Sequence record: OQ992562.1
Strand: one strand, 5' to 3'
Length of the DNA stretch: 64,000 bases
Shown: piece by piece, positions 15,118-42,858 of the stretch
Numbering within the stretch: the first letter of the stretch is position 1
Layout of the letters: each line of letters begins with the position of its first letter
Translations under genes and position numbers: made by a program
The notes under the pieces: model-generated
What the model was told of the DNA's origin: nothing
What the model saw: the letters and a program-made list of their open reading frames with translations, nothing else
Database searches by the model: none

Positions 15118-15431
15118 CGTTATGTTCAGTATCAGTCGTTAATTGATACCCGCACCATTACGTGCAGCTCTAGCTCTCGCTAGAAGACCAGACTATATCT
15201 TCACCTACAGCATCATCTGTTTAGGTGCTCTCCATTTCGGATCACTTGATCCTACGGGGCGCAACCCCCTAGTCGTTGAACGTTCCACATATTACAGTTA
15301 AGTAACTTAGCGGCTTCGCTGCTGATTGTCTCTACCTAATCATTTTCAAACATTCGCACTTACTGTTTCCAGTTATGCTGTAGTTGATTAGTTTAACGAG
15401 AGTTTCCAGCAATTAGAAGAGTAAAACATAT

Positions 15432-16505
15432 TCATTTCGGAATATGTGGACTTATGTATTTTACTGCATAATTTCTAAAAATACAACCATGTTCAGATTT
15501 CCTTAGATGATAACCTAAGCAACCTGGTGTGACATTGAAAAACTCGGCGGCTTCCTTCAGTGAGTTTTTTATTAATACAGCTTCAGATTCTAATGATTCA
15601 ATATGAATTCTACGATGGGTTTCCACATACATGAGATTATCATTATTCCATGGTGTATCATCATCTTCGTATTTAAACTGTAATGACTGATTGTAAACAA
15701 GATTACTATTTTTAGTTAAACGTAATCTTAAAGTTTCACCATCTATACCAATTTCTCGGGCGCATTGTTCTATGCTGTAATAACGAGTTATATTGGTAGT
15801 TATAAGGTCTCTGACCAAAACTGCTTTGGAATTATGAAGTCCATTGATGTGCGCATGTTCGCAATTTCTTTTACGAGTAGCCCATTCAAGGTTTGTTAAA
15901 TCATTACAATCTTTAATTGTATTTAAATGATTCACATCAAGTGAATCAACATTACCTGGATATTTTAAAAAAGCTAGACTAAGAAGACGGTGCATTCCTA
16001 CAATTGTACGTTTACCTACATCCGGCTGAACACCATACATCAGATAACCATCTTCATTCATGTATGGTGAAAGATGATTACTGCTAACAGTACTAAGTAC
16101 TTGTCCAGCGCTATTAATCATGTATCTACTGTATCCGGGAATATAACAGTATTCTTTTATTAATGGATGGGTAAGTTCGCCTTCAGGACATGCCCAAATA
16201 AAATTAGTTAGGCGATGATTACTTTTATTACCGTCTTTGTAAATAACGCGTAGTTTATGTAGTAACCGCATTGGTAATATGCAGTTTCTATACGTAACAC
16301 CTAATACAACAGATAGTGCCAAACCGTCAAACCATTCACCTGTTGTATGTTCAGGAAAAAGATGTTCGCCTTCATCACTAACCATTGTGGTCAGTACGCG
16401 TTTACTTATACTTTCTCTAGCTATACCACTACAGCTGATTTCATACATGCCACCAGTGTGTGGTATCTTTTTAAATCCTGGATTTTCAATGAATTTTTTT
16501 AACAT
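15432..16505 (-). CDS. Intron-encoded HNH homing endonuclease (NUMOD4-HNH type, gp179-like)
   Basis: MHRLL...VNHLNTIKDCNDLTNLEW HNH motif preceded by a NUMOD4-like segment; lies inside the intron. Confidence 0.88.
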   Translation of the reverse strand: MLKKFIENPGFKKIPHTGGMYEISCSGIARESISKRVLTTMVSDEGEHLFPEHTTGEWFDGLALSVVLGVTYRNCILPMRLLHKLRVIYKDGNKSNHRLTNFIWACPEGELTHPLIKEYCYIPGYSRYMINSAGQVLSTVSSNHLSPYMNEDGYLMYGVQPDVGKRTIVGMHRLLSLAFLKYPGNVDSLDVNHLNTIKDCNDLTNLEWATRKRNCEHAHINGLHNSKAVLVRDLITTNITRYYSIEQCAREIGIDGETLRLRLTKNSNLVYNQSLQFKYEDDDTPWNNDNLMYVETHRRIHIESLESEAVLIKNSLKEAAEFFNVTPGCLGYHLRKSEHGCIFRNYAVKYISPHIPK

Positions 16506-39434: not shown

Positions 39435-41546
39435 TTAAAACCGCATATATGCGGGCTGATATGGTTTATACATACGTGTATCAAAGTCATTAAAATCAAT
39501 TGCGATATCATACTTCTCAAATGATTCTTTTAGCATCTGATAAATGATTTTATTTTCATCAAAATTATTATTTTTATCAACATAACTTTCTAATGACTCT
39601 GTGATCTCAAATGGAGATTTAATACCCATAATAGCTTCAACCATTGCCTGACTCCATTTTAGAATGTCATCTGACCTTGTTGAGATATTCGGTTCATCTT
39701 CTGTATCGAGAGTACATTGATATACGACTGTTTGTGAATCCTGACCTTTACGGTAAATTCGAGCAATAGCTTGTTCTAGAATGTAATGCCTAAACGGTGA
39801 ATTAATTGTCACCATAGTATCAGCCATCGTCATACGGACCGCTGTTGAAAGGGAAGCATATGTAGCTACCAATGGATTTAATTTAGGGTCTTTCTCAAAT
39901 CTACTGATTATTTGAGGTAAATTGTCATTGGTTTTACCATACACCACCGCCGGATGCATACCTAATTTATTGGTGTACTTATCAACAGTATCAACAACCT
40001 CAACAAACGATGTAAATGCAATCGTTTTCTTCATAGTTGATTCAGTGATACCAACCCAGTCAATATACGGTACCATGTCCACATGGCACTGAATGCGTTT
40101 AGCACCTAAAACCCTTCCCAAACATTCACCTTGTATCTTTAGCATAACGTATTTTATAACTGATTTAATATCTCTAAAAGCAGCTATTTCATTACGAGGT
40201 AAAGTTGGCTCTATAAACATTTTTTCATATTGGTTAGATTCTTTAATTTCTTCACCAATGTATCGCGGGTCTTGATTCTTCTGAATTATTTTAATCAAAT
40301 TCTTATAGCGAGCGAAACCATCTTTCTGCGCCTGGGTCTTAAGAGAGTTCTCGTGTATCGCCATTAGTTTAGCCCAATACTTCTCATCTTCTGGTCGGCG
40401 CGCAGCATAGAACTTTACACGTTCTCTAATAAAAGCTTCACAATCACGTTTAATGGCATTAAGAGTATACTGTGATCCATTTGGTATCTTGATACGATAC
40501 GCTTTTATCCTCGGTGGTAAAACCTCAGTATCTTTCTTTTCAATGACGTACGCAATTAACCCAAAGCGATGTTGGACAATATCTAATCCTTTCTGTGTCT
40601 CTTTTCCAAATGCTTTCTTAAAACGTTCTTCAACCTCATTGGTGAAGAGATCGTCTAATACTCTTAATGCACTTACTAATTCAGAACCAAGTGCTTTAAC
40701 AGGGGTACCTGACGCTAATAATCTGTTATTAGAGTTAGACATAAAACATATTTGCTGGAACTTAAGAGATTGTGCAGAATTAGGATCGTTCATATTGTGT
40801 GATTCATCCAGAATCACCGTAATGTTCTTACCTTTGAATATACCGCTTCTTAATAGATCAATTATTTTATCTTGCGCCTGGTAATGGGATATAAGTATTC
40901 TTTGACCGTTGTAGGCTTTATCATCAATGGTCGACCATACTTTTTGTCTTTCCTTATACATCTCAATAATAGATGGCTTCCATATTAGATCAATAGACTT
41001 CTTTTCACAAACAACTATAATGATATCCGACTCAACCATTTCAGCAATAGCCATCGTCATGAATGTCTTACCAGTACCAGGTTTACCTGCAACAATATCA
41101 CCACGTAAACCATACTGGTCAATTCGATAATTATAATTTTCAAAATAAGCTTTTTGAGACTCATCTGGTGTAAATGTCAATTTGTCTAACATCTTGAAAT
41201 TGAGTCTACCTGGTACAGAGTTGGTATCTACAGGACGAGTATTTTTTAACCAGGTATATTGAAGCATTGCTTCACGGATGGCATTAACAGTTTTAATAGA
41301 GATGTATCTACTTCTATAATTCTTTACTGCTTCTAGCATGTAATATATTTCAGGAGCAAAGAATTTATAAAATGAAATACTACGACGACTAACCGTGTTA
41401 AATAACTGCGTAGCTAATTTAGTGGTTCGCCAATACTTGTTAATATCTCTAATGAATGCAGCACCATCAAAACCACTGATGATAATTTCTTGATCAGTTT
41501 CAGTAATTGATAGCGAGCCCATTAGCTTCCTAAATGAGTCTATCAT
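39435..41546 (-). CDS. SF2 (SNF2/DEAD-like) helicase, gp203-like
   Basis: GKPGTGKT, ILDESH, ASGTP and QAIARIYRKGQ. Confidence 0.9.
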   Translation of the reverse strand: MIDSFRKLMGSLSITETDQEIIISGFDGAAFIRDINKYWRTTKLATQLFNTVSRRSISFYKFFAPEIYYMLEAVKNYRSRYISIKTVNAIREAMLQYTWLKNTRPVDTNSVPGRLNFKMLDKLTFTPDESQKAYFENYNYRIDQYGLRGDIVAGKPGTGKTFMTMAIAEMVESDIIIVVCEKKSIDLIWKPSIIEMYKERQKVWSTIDDKAYNGQRILISHYQAQDKIIDLLRSGIFKGKNITVILDESHNMNDPNSAQSLKFQQICFMSNSNNRLLASGTPVKALGSELVSALRVLDDLFTNEVEERFKKAFGKETQKGLDIVQHRFGLIAYVIEKKDTEVLPPRIKAYRIKIPNGSQYTLNAIKRDCEAFIRERVKFYAARRPEDEKYWAKLMAIHENSLKTQAQKDGFARYKNLIKIIQKNQDPRYIGEEIKESNQYEKMFIEPTLPRNEIAAFRDIKSVIKYVMLKIQGECLGRVLGAKRIQCHVDMVPYIDWVGITESTMKKTIAFTSFVEVVDTVDKYTNKLGMHPAVVYGKTNDNLPQIISRFEKDPKLNPLVATYASLSTAVRMTMADTMVTINSPFRHYILEQAIARIYRKGQDSQTVVYQCTLDTEDEPNISTRSDDILKWSQAMVEAIMGIKSPFEITESLESYVDKNNNFDENKIIYQMLKESFEKYDIAIDFNDFDTRMYKPYQPAYMRF

Positions 41547-41632
41547 TGCATTTTTCCTTAAGGGGTATGTAAATATAACTCTAAGTCATAAGATTAGCTA
41601 ACGAATAAAAATACGCACAGTGCAATGATATA

Positions 41633-41776
41633 GAGCAAGGCAGTTTGCGTAAAACGCACTGCACTTTAAGGGGGTGATCCAGTCGTAAATAAACCGGGGT
41701 ACTAAAGTATCGTCAGGAACGACACGAACCCCAACTACGGTGCCTTGCTACTCACCGACCTCTAGATAGGGGTCGG
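41633..41776 (+). ncRNA. Candidate structured non-coding RNA
   Basis: About 51% GC (hand count over 41631-41780), no ORF, nested stems, followed by a terminator. Confidence 0.6.
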
Positions 41777-41788
41777 ACCTATTACATT

Positions 41789-41813
41789 AAAGGAGCCCAC
41801 CAGGGGCTCCTTT
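41789..41813 (+). terminator. Intrinsic terminator after the candidate ncRNA
   Basis: AAAGGAGCCC...GGGCTCCTTT. Confidence 0.75.
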
Positions 41814-41842
41814 ATGCCATTCATTATAAATTAATTTAAATC

Positions 41843-41850
41843 TATATTAC
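41843..41850 (+). promoter_or_regulatory. phiKZ-type early promoter (TATATTAC)
   Basis: TTTAAATCTATATTAC upstream of ORF 41897. Confidence 0.75.
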
Positions 41851-41896
41851 AGGATTACCATAAAGATATTTATCCTTTTATAATGAGGAAAAGATT

Positions 41897-42292
41897 ATGT
41901 CCGATATTAATAGCACCAATGTAACAGATGAATTAGTACCTTATTTTCCATCGGCGGATGCCATTACTAGTTCTACTATTAGGGATGAAGTAATTCCTAA
42001 TATTTTGTTATTCTACAAGAATGCTTTTAGTGACTTCCAACACGTTAGTAATATCACAGGTACTAACCAGATTGCATCAGGTTATTTACCAGGTGTAGGT
42101 TATTATTTCGAGTATAGTGTTACCGGTAATGCTAATCTTATTCCACCTGAAGCAATTAAAGTATTACGTAATGTAATCACTAAAAATGGATATAAAGATG
42201 ACATTACCATCACACCAAAAGGTTTTGGCCTAATCAATTGGTTCATTGTAAGAGTATACGTAGATGAGCAAATTAAGAAGACTACTCAATAA
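41897..42292 (+). CDS. Hypothetical early protein, 131 aa
   Basis: GAGGA RBS. Confidence 0.8.
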   Translation: MSDINSTNVTDELVPYFPSADAITSSTIRDEVIPNILLFYKNAFSDFQHVSNITGTNQIASGYLPGVGYYFEYSVTGNANLIPPEAIKVLRNVITKNGYKDDITITPKGFGLINWFIVRVYVDEQIKKTTQ

Positions 42293-42440
42293 AGAATTAG
42301 AAAAAGAGTTAGTTAAAAAACTAGATTTTCTAGAACGTGATTTTAGAGCTATAAAAGAAGTTATCAAAACTGGAAAATATCCTGATCCTGTTAATCCGAA
42401 TCGCAGACAAAGTGATTATGATTTATCTTTTAATAATTAA
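42264..42440 (+). CDS. Small basic helical protein, 58 aa (not in ORF track)
   Basis: Manual translation MSKLRRLLNKELEKELVKKLDFLERDFRAIKEVIKTGKYPDPVNPNRRQSDYDLSFNN; fills the gap between neighbouring genes. Confidence 0.65.
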   Translation: MSKLRRLLNKELEKELVKKLDFLERDFRAIKEVIKTGKYPDPVNPNRRQSDYDLSFNN

Positions 42441-42456
42441 CCTATAAGAGGATGCT

Positions 42457-42858
42457 ATGGAAATCACATTTCCATCTGTAAAAGAAGTAATGACAACTGA
42501 TCCAGCATTTATTGATTTGGTTCTGAAAAGTAAATTACTTACTATCCGTAAAGCAATGATTGATGTTATTCGAAACATTGAGAATACATCACTAGCATCT
42601 AGTAGGCTTGTTAAACAGAAAAGCTATCCATATCAAACTACTTTCGAACTTGTATTTAACCCAAAGGTTTTTAAATGGTTTGATAAAACAGATGCTATCA
42701 ATATTAAAAATATTCTTCATGCTGAAGTAGTTAACCAGGATTGGGAGAGTATTGATATTTCTTATAATGGTAGGGATATACATGGTTTTGAAAAAGTGAC
42801 TATTGTATTAACTCCTATGAAAGATGAAGCTATTAAATATGATCTTTCAAAAGCATGA
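42457..42858 (+). CDS. Hypothetical protein, 133 aa
   Basis: GAGGA RBS. Confidence 0.8.
   Translation: MEITFPSVKEVMTTDPAFIDLVLKSKLLTIRKAMIDVIRNIENTSLASSRLVKQKSYPYQTTFELVFNPKVFKWFDKTDAINIKNILHAEVVNQDWESIDISYNGRDIHGFEKVTIVLTPMKDEAIKYDLSKA

Follow-up and report, generated by a model that had tools for sequence, protein, structure and literature searches.

A conserved small mRNA of 165 nt has been described in the Bradyrhizobiaceae. It is enriched in the ribosome fraction, carries an extended Shine–Dalgarno (SD) sequence of 17 nt and encodes a peptide of 14 aa (PMC5711450). In Haloferax, a fragment of Val-tRNA binds the 30S subunit and competes with mRNA (PMC5711459, PMC11009984); the second of these reports, according to its abstract, places the binding at the decoding site. 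In the Bacteroidia, the 3′ tail of 16S rRNA is occluded by bS21, bS18 and bS6 (PMC9976891).

Short RNAs have been reported for Pseudomonas phage phiKZ from ONT-cappable-seq and Grad-seq. Those that have been named derive from the 5′UTRs of PHIKZ221, PHIKZ302 and gp40 and from the 3′UTR of PHIKZ298, and include an sRNA upstream of gp182 that is conserved between 201phi2-1 and phiKZ (PMC10914365, PMC8545117, PMC11512511). The ncRNAs found in phiKZ by Grad-seq are the 3′UTR of PHIKZ298 and the 5′UTR of gp40. A single sRNA of 75 nt was predicted by Wicke et al., and northern blotting did not confirm it. Neither a function nor complementarity to 16S rRNA is reported for the named RNAs in the literature searched, and the reviews up to 2026 (two, from 2025–26) state that phiKZ expresses ncRNAs without assigning them a function. 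Ribosome targeting in phiKZ has so far been tied to proteins only, for example PhiKZ014 (PMC10914614). The literature searched contained no paper linking a phiKZ RNA to the anti-Shine–Dalgarno (anti-SD) sequence, and no report of a virus that uses RNA against the anti-SD site of 16S rRNA. Described here is an abundant phiKZ RNA that carries a long, conserved complement to that site.

The locus and its transcript

The sequence analysed, referred to below as the window, is a stretch of 64,000 nt from record OQ992562.1. It represents phiKZ: positions 41400–42000 are 100% identical to positions 212621–213221 of AF399011, and AF399011 coordinates are obtained by adding 171221 to the window position. 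The RNA gene is situated between PHIKZ203 (39435–41546, minus strand), which encodes an SNF2/DarB-like helicase, and PHIKZ204 (from 41897, plus strand), the gene on its 3′ side. RefSeq has no annotation in the gap between these genes, and no ORF of at least 30 aa was found there (41547–41896). The G+C content is 0.46–0.49 over 41600–41800, in comparison with 0.29–0.36 in the flanks. The ORF-free, G+C-rich island described in a first-pass annotation of this DNA was thus confirmed.

The plus strand of the region is predicted to fold at –71.4 kcal/mol (z = –4.9), and none of 200 shuffled sequences folded as well. A nearly equal score was obtained for the minus strand (z = –4.6), and the strand was therefore not assignable from folding alone. 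Rfam, searched over the whole window at the gathering threshold, gave a group I intron elsewhere as its sole match. That catalytic intron lies at 15168–15489 on the minus strand and matches the full length of its model (RF00028, 93.4 bits, E = 1e–22). With the threshold relaxed to E ≤ 10 for 41500–41900, the best scores were at most 16 bits, with E values of at least 3.7. There was no Rfam match to RsmY/Z, CrcZ or 6S RNA from the locus, and ARAGORN detected neither a tRNA nor a tmRNA. In the first-pass annotation, no match to tRNA, SRP RNA or the common ribozyme cores had been seen by eye, and a check with Infernal had been suggested.

Logan contigs of four public RNA runs were mapped on positions 40800–42600. 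It is apparent from these contigs that the gap is transcribed into a discrete RNA, the major form of which is 150 nt long and lies on the plus strand (41632..41781, corresponding to 212853–213002 of AF399011). In the nanopore cDNA run X12, depths of 1513, 5842 and 4975 were observed in the three bins spanning 41593–41775, against 77–174 in the bins to the left and 13–20 from 41837 rightwards. In the public libraries the RNA is approximately 40–250 times deeper than neighbouring sequence, a ratio to be read as approximate, contig depth being a rough measure and cappable-seq favouring short RNAs. A stand-alone plus-strand phage RNA of about 150–200 nt, possibly already present in phiKZ RNA-seq data, had been proposed from the letters of the sequence; both expectations proved correct, in that a transcript with its own start and end is seen in public libraries.

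The 5′ end was placed at A41632. The nanopore strand-switch primer abuts this position in three contigs, one of which reads primer-GGG-AGAGC. A41632 falls inside the conserved promoter/start motif AATGATATAG (41624..41633, plus strand), and a TATG at 41566, which had been put forward as a late-promoter core, is accordingly not the promoter of the RNA. At the other end, poly(A) follows 41781 in run X12 and the Illumina adapter follows 41781 in run X4. The mapped terminus, ...GGUCGGACCUA, is 5 nt past a 9-bp hairpin (41755–41776). With the primer on the left and poly(A) on the right, the transcript is assigned to the plus strand; the neighbouring helicase transcript displays the mirror-image pattern. 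A minus-strand mimic of the 16S 3′ end was considered as a candidate and ruled out, as the primer/poly(A) orientation and the terminators all point in the plus direction.

A second terminator (41789..41816, plus strand; stem AAAGGAGCCC/GGGGCUCCUUU with TTTATG) is conserved in relatives and conforms to the terminator motif published for phiKZ, in which TTAT comes after a stem (PMC10914365). The depth in run X12 is 203 in the bin 41776–41836, and a separate contig in run X9 (41609–41818) indicates that some transcripts extend to this terminator. The element that had been recognized as the RNA’s own terminator is therefore a canonical one of the phiKZ type, but the major 3′ end precedes it, at 41781, after the 41755–41776 hairpin. 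A start inside a TATG-like motif and a stem-plus-TTAT terminator are the marks of a phiKZ phage-polymerase unit; promoters of the TATG class, reportedly described by Ceyssens et al. in 2014, are said to be used by the non-virion phage polymerase. Both are seen at this locus, with the 5′ end lying in TATAG: transcription starts from a phage promoter of the TATAG/TATG type, and the RNA reaches very high levels.

The PHIKZ203 helicase transcript, on the minus strand, starts at 41587 within cTTATGa. In the nanopore run it is accompanied by a short minus-strand species of 181 nt (41407–41587), with poly(A) at 41407, approximately 140 nt into the PHIKZ203 coding sequence. Its depth is 138, versus 77 for the remainder of the gene, and it could represent premature termination or a stable 5′ fragment.

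Distribution and genomic context

Homologues were gathered with a covariance model (R1) in addition to BLAST and pattern scans. In total, 19 distinct homologues, one copy per genome, were identified in phiKZ-like Pseudomonas jumbo phages and metagenomic contigs. The isolates are phiKZ, PS119XW, PhiPA3, 201phi2-1, Phabio, Psa21, D6 and Noxifer; these eight, together with two IMG/VR contigs, constitute the first 10 members referred to below. Nine more distinct members derive from IMG/VR and metagenomes, with some of the contigs 170–290 kb in length. An identical start motif, AATGATATAG, is shared by phiKZ, PS119XW, PhiPA3 and Phabio; every other member has TATAG or TATG at this place (TATG in the L341 clade and Noxifer). 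Every member bears a terminator of the phiKZ type.

Searches of other chimalliviruses with R1 recovered no member from phages infecting Xanthomonas, Ralstonia, Erwinia, Serratia, Klebsiella, Vibrio or Aeromonas, nor from the Escherichia coli phage Goslar or an EL-like phage; a filters-off run on the stretches retrieved, mostly helicase-flanking loci, gave the same outcome. The 11-mer GGRGGTGATCC occurs three times in 12 chimallivirus genomes from other hosts, about the number expected by chance, and Goslar and Deimos-Minion are for that reason not counted as members. Also excluded were weak matches in OBP (E = 0.26), L438/L456 and L481/L519, which carry ORFs or lack the fold. A first scan of viral sequences with AATGATATAG...GGCAG was too loose and yielded mostly chance matches. 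The helicase protein, used as a query against IMG/VR, retrieved no related loci.

Two of the candidates left out have features of their own. In Goslar (L391/L392; NC_048170, ~87200–87412, minus strand), a gap of 213 nt between gp077 and gp076 contains UAGGAGGUGAUCC, which can pair with the 16S tail over 13 nt. The gap also has a hairpin capped by GUGA and a terminator of the phiKZ type with CTTTATG. Model R1 does not recognize this gap, and chance would produce about one 11-mer of this kind in every few genomes. The element may be an analogue or a coincidence. The related metagenome contigs L481 (216–301, minus strand) and L519 (615–704, minus strand) carry AAGGAGGTGATCCA directly before a TTG and an ORF of 11 codons, followed by a classical U-tailed terminator. 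The L481/L519 element is a different small transcript with an extended SD, outside the RNA family.

The position of the RNA gene relative to its neighbours varies. It lies approximately 75–715 nt from the helicase start in 8 of 10 genomes and does not adjoin the helicase in the other two. Its orientation relative to the helicase is inverted in PhiPA3, where the helicase is the next gene after the RNA, and in PS119XW the RNA is antisense to both neighbours. No homologue of gp204 was found within ~1.5 kb of the RNA in the nine relatives checked, and the downstream gene differs among phages. Since both the downstream gene and the orientation vary, the RNA constitutes its own transcription unit and is not the leader of one gene. 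Nor do these arrangements favour the suggestion, made at first reading, that it regulates the divergent helicase operon.

Additional features of these neighbourhoods were observed. In PhiPA3 (L003/L379, 1501–1745), the RNA gene is co-directional with the helicase, between gp200 and gp203 homologues, and the helicase promoter motif AATCTTATGAC is retained after the RNA terminator; in seven other genomes the two genes diverge. At 41843–41850 of the window, beyond the RNA terminator, there is an TATATTAC that resembles an early promoter, and it recurs at this place in Psa21, D6, Phabio and a 307-kb IMG/VR contig. This recurrence indicates that the RNA gene is located at a conserved boundary between transcription units. 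Homologues of the PHIKZ203 helicase are annotated as SNF2/DEAD-like helicase, DarB-like antirestriction protein, or virion-associated or structural protein. They occur in 206 phage records from many host genera, a far wider spread than that of the RNA.

Secondary structure

Comparison of the homologues supports, by covariation, a three-way junction composed of P1, P2, and a helix P3 that encloses P4. In an alignment of the 19 sequences to the covariance model, 93% of the cells are paired and compensatory changes are present in 11 of the 17 pairs. None of 500 shuffles reached the observed value, and 3′ partners that had been slid out of register were 27–44% paired. An alignment of this kind is fitted to the model and hence biased toward the structure. 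An alignment made with MAFFT from sequence only misplaces P1 and P3, and RNAalifold then finds only P4 and a trivial 3-bp hairpin; for this reason the covariance-model alignment was used together with helices verified by script. In the first 10 sequences, every helix that the script identified is complementary throughout and occupies a constant position.

P1 is formed by AGCAAGG (41634..41640) and the strand at 41743–41749. Its inner pairs, AAGG/CCUU, are invariant or nearly so in the 19 sequences, and its outer pairs covary. P2 (41641..41661) consists of CAG/CUG, which is 100% paired, and the extension UGCGU-AAA-ACGCA. The extension is variable, or absent in the L341 clade, and in Psa21, D6 and Noxifer other G+C-rich hairpins stand in place of this one. 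P3 pairs GGGGU (41696..41700) with ACCCC (41728..41732) and displays compensatory changes in all five pairs, with approximately 14 different helices distinguishable by eye among the 19 sequences. In the first 10 there are nine different helices, 100% paired within sequences as against 46% across sequences; P3 encloses 26–30 nt in all of them, with a 2-nt bulge added in Psa21. P4 (41710..41722, UCGU-CAGGA-ACGA) lies inside P3 and pairs 41710–41713 with 41719–41722. All four of its pairs covary, and its loop is of the GNRA type (GGGA, GAGA, GUGA or GCGA) in most relatives. The phiKZ loop (41714–41718) is the 5-nt CAGGA in place of such a tetraloop; it resembles a single RsmA/CsrA site and is not conserved. 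P5, the 9-bp hairpin at 41755..41776, has a counterpart at the same position in 8 of 10 relatives.

The helices listed in the first-pass annotation fared differently. All of the segments are present in the single-sequence minimum free energy (MFE) structure, and the closing stem (as P1, 41634–41640 with 41743–41749) and the hairpin at 41646–41658 are conserved, but the inner helices are not. GGGGT (41671–41675)/ACCCC, GTCGT/ACGAC and GGTAC/GTATC occur in the phiKZ MFE structure and have no counterpart in relatives, and the GGGGT at 41671–41675 belongs instead to the invariant strand considered in the next section. The second GGGGT, at 41696, had been mentioned as an alternative, and it is this one that pairs with ACCCC, a pairing supported by the covariation in P3. 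The conservation of structure in relatives that had been named as a check was observed across the 19 homologues.

Complementarity to the 3′ end of 16S rRNA

The junction strand J2/3 (UAAGGGGGUGAUCCAGUCGUA, 41667..41687, plus strand) contains the sole long block that is invariant in the 19 members, AGG-R-GGUGAUCCA (41669–41681). This block lies outside every consensus helix, and the sequences of P3 and P4 change wholly among members. In phiKZ, J2/3 can form 21 contiguous pairs (three of them G·U) with positions 1522–1542 of 16S rRNA. Contiguous complementarity of 14–21 bp, counting Watson–Crick and G·U pairs, is found in all 19 members (16S 1522/28–1540/42). The target comprises the anti-SD tail (1530–1542) and, beyond it, part of the helix 45 3′ strand. 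Where J2/3 varies, pairing is kept by G·U: A or G stands opposite U1537, and C or U opposite G1525 and G1526. Such variation fits an RNA of the plus strand only, because the opposite strand would give C–A mismatches. The perfect 14-mer match occurs once in the 64-kb window.

The 16S reference was the P. putida copy (L177). An exact scan of genomes with the 41-nt Pseudomonas 16S 3′ end gave P. putida, P. fluorescens and many others among the matches listed, and the known hosts are all Pseudomonas, with one shared 16S tail. The 3′ end in P. aeruginosa is presumably the same sequence as that in P. putida.

The predicted energy of the J2/3 duplex is –28.4 kcal/mol with a 16-nt 16S tail and –37.2 kcal/mol with a 21-nt tail. 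For 67 phiKZ gene starts compared with the 16S tail, the mean was –6.0 and the best –11.4 kcal/mol, with Watson–Crick runs of 3–7 nt; about half of the phiKZ gene starts examined have a GGAG-type motif, indicative of SD use. In partition functions for single sequences, the invariant core is only modestly more often unpaired (probability 0.39–0.59) than the RNA as a whole (0.34–0.44), and opening it is predicted to cost 3.6–7.6 kcal/mol.

A second, independent segment of the RNA, comprising J3/1 (AACUACGGUG) and the P1 3′ strand CCUUGCU (together 41733..41749, plus strand) with a few additional bases, was used in a duplex scan against 16S rRNA. The best of the 503 windows was ~1486–1515, immediately upstream of the J2/3 target; this site was the top-ranking one in 8 of 10 homologues and took second place in another. 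When the whole RNA was paired with the last 45 nt of 16S rRNA, predicted energies lay between –47 and –60 kcal/mol, with z from –4 to –9 relative to shuffled sequences, and the pairing was bipartite in 7 of 10 homologues, with P3/P4 looped out. Judged by sequence, the RNA looks like an antisense copy of the last ~45–50 nt of 16S rRNA in which the tip of helix 45 has been replaced by P3/P4. This likeness may record the origin of the RNA, its mode of action, or both. In the mature 30S subunit, positions 1522–1529 and 1501–1514 are base-paired or buried.

Discussion

The reading favoured here, which is given an even chance of being correct, is that the RNA acts in trans as a stand-alone ncRNA that would bind and mask the 3′ end of host 16S rRNA. 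The retention of a long complement while the remainder of the RNA diverges is the pattern expected of a trans-acting RNA antisense to 16S rRNA, a class that is proposed here and not an established family. That 16S rRNA is the partner, and what binding would do to translation, are inferences. The RNA would use J2/3 to dock on the free 16S 3′ tail of 30S or 70S particles, and would be held there much more firmly than the ribosome-binding site of any mRNA. Once bound it would mask the anti-SD, and SD-dependent initiation on the bound ribosomes would be blocked or re-programmed; parking of ribosomes is a further possible consequence. Alternatively, the duplex might shield the 16S 3′ end from 3′ exonucleases. 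The mRNAs of nucleus-forming jumbo phages exit the phage nucleus and are preferentially translated by host ribosomes. Because phiKZ mRNAs use SD sequences, a global anti-SD mask would affect phage translation too, unless it were timed or sub-stoichiometric.

In an extended form of this proposal, the RNA would invade the 3′ minor domain of 16S rRNA in bipartite fashion. J2/3 would use the free anti-SD tail as a toehold and reach from there to the helix 45 3′ strand. The 5′ strand of helix 45, together with the end of helix 44 (~1495–1514), would then be captured by J3/1 and the P1 3′ strand, and the P3/P4 domain would replace the dimethyl-adenosine loop. Host small subunits would thereby be unfolded or their maturation blocked, or the 16S 3′ end would be locked against 3′ exonucleases. 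With the inner 16S positions paired or buried, mature ribosomes may not permit both parts of this pairing to form in full; complete invasion is for that reason ranked below masking of the tail, and is considered improbable. If it did occur, a viral RNA would remodel rRNA, beyond occupying a binding site.

The invariance of J2/3 might instead reflect the binding of a protein, from the phage or from the host, or a tertiary contact in a structural or scaffold RNA, with the likeness to an SD incidental or a relic of capture. The inner P1 pairs AAGG/CCUU are invariant as well, which suggests sequence-specific recognition beyond pairing, the conserved GNRA loop of P4 suggests a compact tertiary fold, and phiKZ mRNAs themselves need the anti-SD. 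The resemblance to 16S rRNA could in part be a relic of the capture of an antisense 16S fragment, an origin with which the bipartite antisense likeness agrees. Against this stand the 13 invariant bases and the behaviour of the 3–8 flanking positions, which vary only in ways that keep the 16S pairing by G·U wobble; variation of this kind is predicted by RNA–RNA pairing and not by protein recognition. A relic, moreover, would be expected to decay in lineages in which P2, P3 and P4 have changed completely. Recognition by a protein or a structural role is accordingly thought rather unlikely, though less so than the readings that follow.

The RNA could also be mRNA-like, its SD-like core serving as a strong ribosome-binding or standby site for a tiny ORF, or the whole as a leader or attenuator of PHIKZ204. 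It lies upstream of that gene on the same strand with some read-through, many short phiKZ RNAs were classed as 5′UTR-derived by Putzeys et al., and the Bradyrhizobiaceae provide a precedent for a small mRNA with a 17-nt SD (PMC5711450). In none of the 19 members, however, does an AUG, GUG or UUG follow the core at a distance of 5–10 nt; the only in-frame GUG overlaps the core itself, no ORF is conserved, and the phiKZ gap has no ORF of at least 30 aa. Two terminators and the early-promoter-like TATATTAC separate the RNA from PHIKZ204, and the changes of position, orientation and downstream gene among phages, including the nine relatives without a nearby gp204 homologue, are not those of a cis leader, riboswitch or attenuator. 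A role of this type is judged very unlikely. Somewhat less credence still is given to a sponge for RsmA/RsmN or Hfq, of the sort put forward in the first-pass annotation, or to a decoy for a defence nuclease. The RNA is abundant and structured, and a likeness to single RsmA sites exists in the CAGGA loop of phiKZ P4 and in the GGGA loop that some relatives carry. The RNAs that titrate Rsm/Csr proteins present repeated GGA loops, whereas here there is at most one. In many members the P4 loop is GAGA, GUGA or GCGA, and in 12 of 19 the invariant block has GGGGG and lacks a GGA. As to Hfq, the second terminator is followed by UUUAUG and not by a U-run, and a simple terminator scan for the U-rich 3′ tail of Hfq-dependent sRNAs returned 0 sites; Rfam, as noted above, gave no match to RsmY/Z, CrcZ or 6S RNA.

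The RNA is a candidate for RNA-mediated control of host ribosomes by nucleus-forming jumbo phages, one that is testable by standard assays. It is also a compact natural anti-SD binder, by prediction, and a potential tool.

Among phage RNAs, it is comparable to the named short RNAs of phiKZ in being short, abundant, bounded by a terminator and conserved in relatives, but none of those lies between genes 203 and 204. It may be one of the 17 unnamed, 5′UTR-derived candidates in Table S7 of Putzeys et al. With decoy and sponge RNAs such as RsmY/Z, CrcZ and 6S RNA it shares abundance and structure, and like them it would titrate a component of the expression machinery; those RNAs bind proteins via repeated motifs or promoter mimicry, whereas the phiKZ RNA has a single RNA–RNA antisense site.

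The small mRNA of the Bradyrhizobiaceae, too, is perfectly complementary to the 16S 3′ tail over a long stretch. The phage-encoded RNA differs from it in that a start codon and a conserved ORF are absent, the complement is placed in the junction of a covarying three-way fold and enters helix 45, and a second segment matches 16S ~1486–1515. The Val-tRNA fragment of Haloferax is likewise a small ncRNA proposed to bind the small subunit and hinder mRNA loading; it is processed from a tRNA of the cell, however, and according to the abstract cited above its site is the decoding site and not a long complement to the anti-SD tail, whereas the phiKZ RNA is the product of a dedicated phage gene with a long antisense match to the anti-SD. 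The occlusion described in the Bacteroidia has the same target and the same predicted outcome, an anti-SD that is unavailable for SD pairing. There it is constitutive and brought about by the host’s own ribosomal proteins; in phiKZ it would be imposed by a virus, in the form of an RNA duplex.
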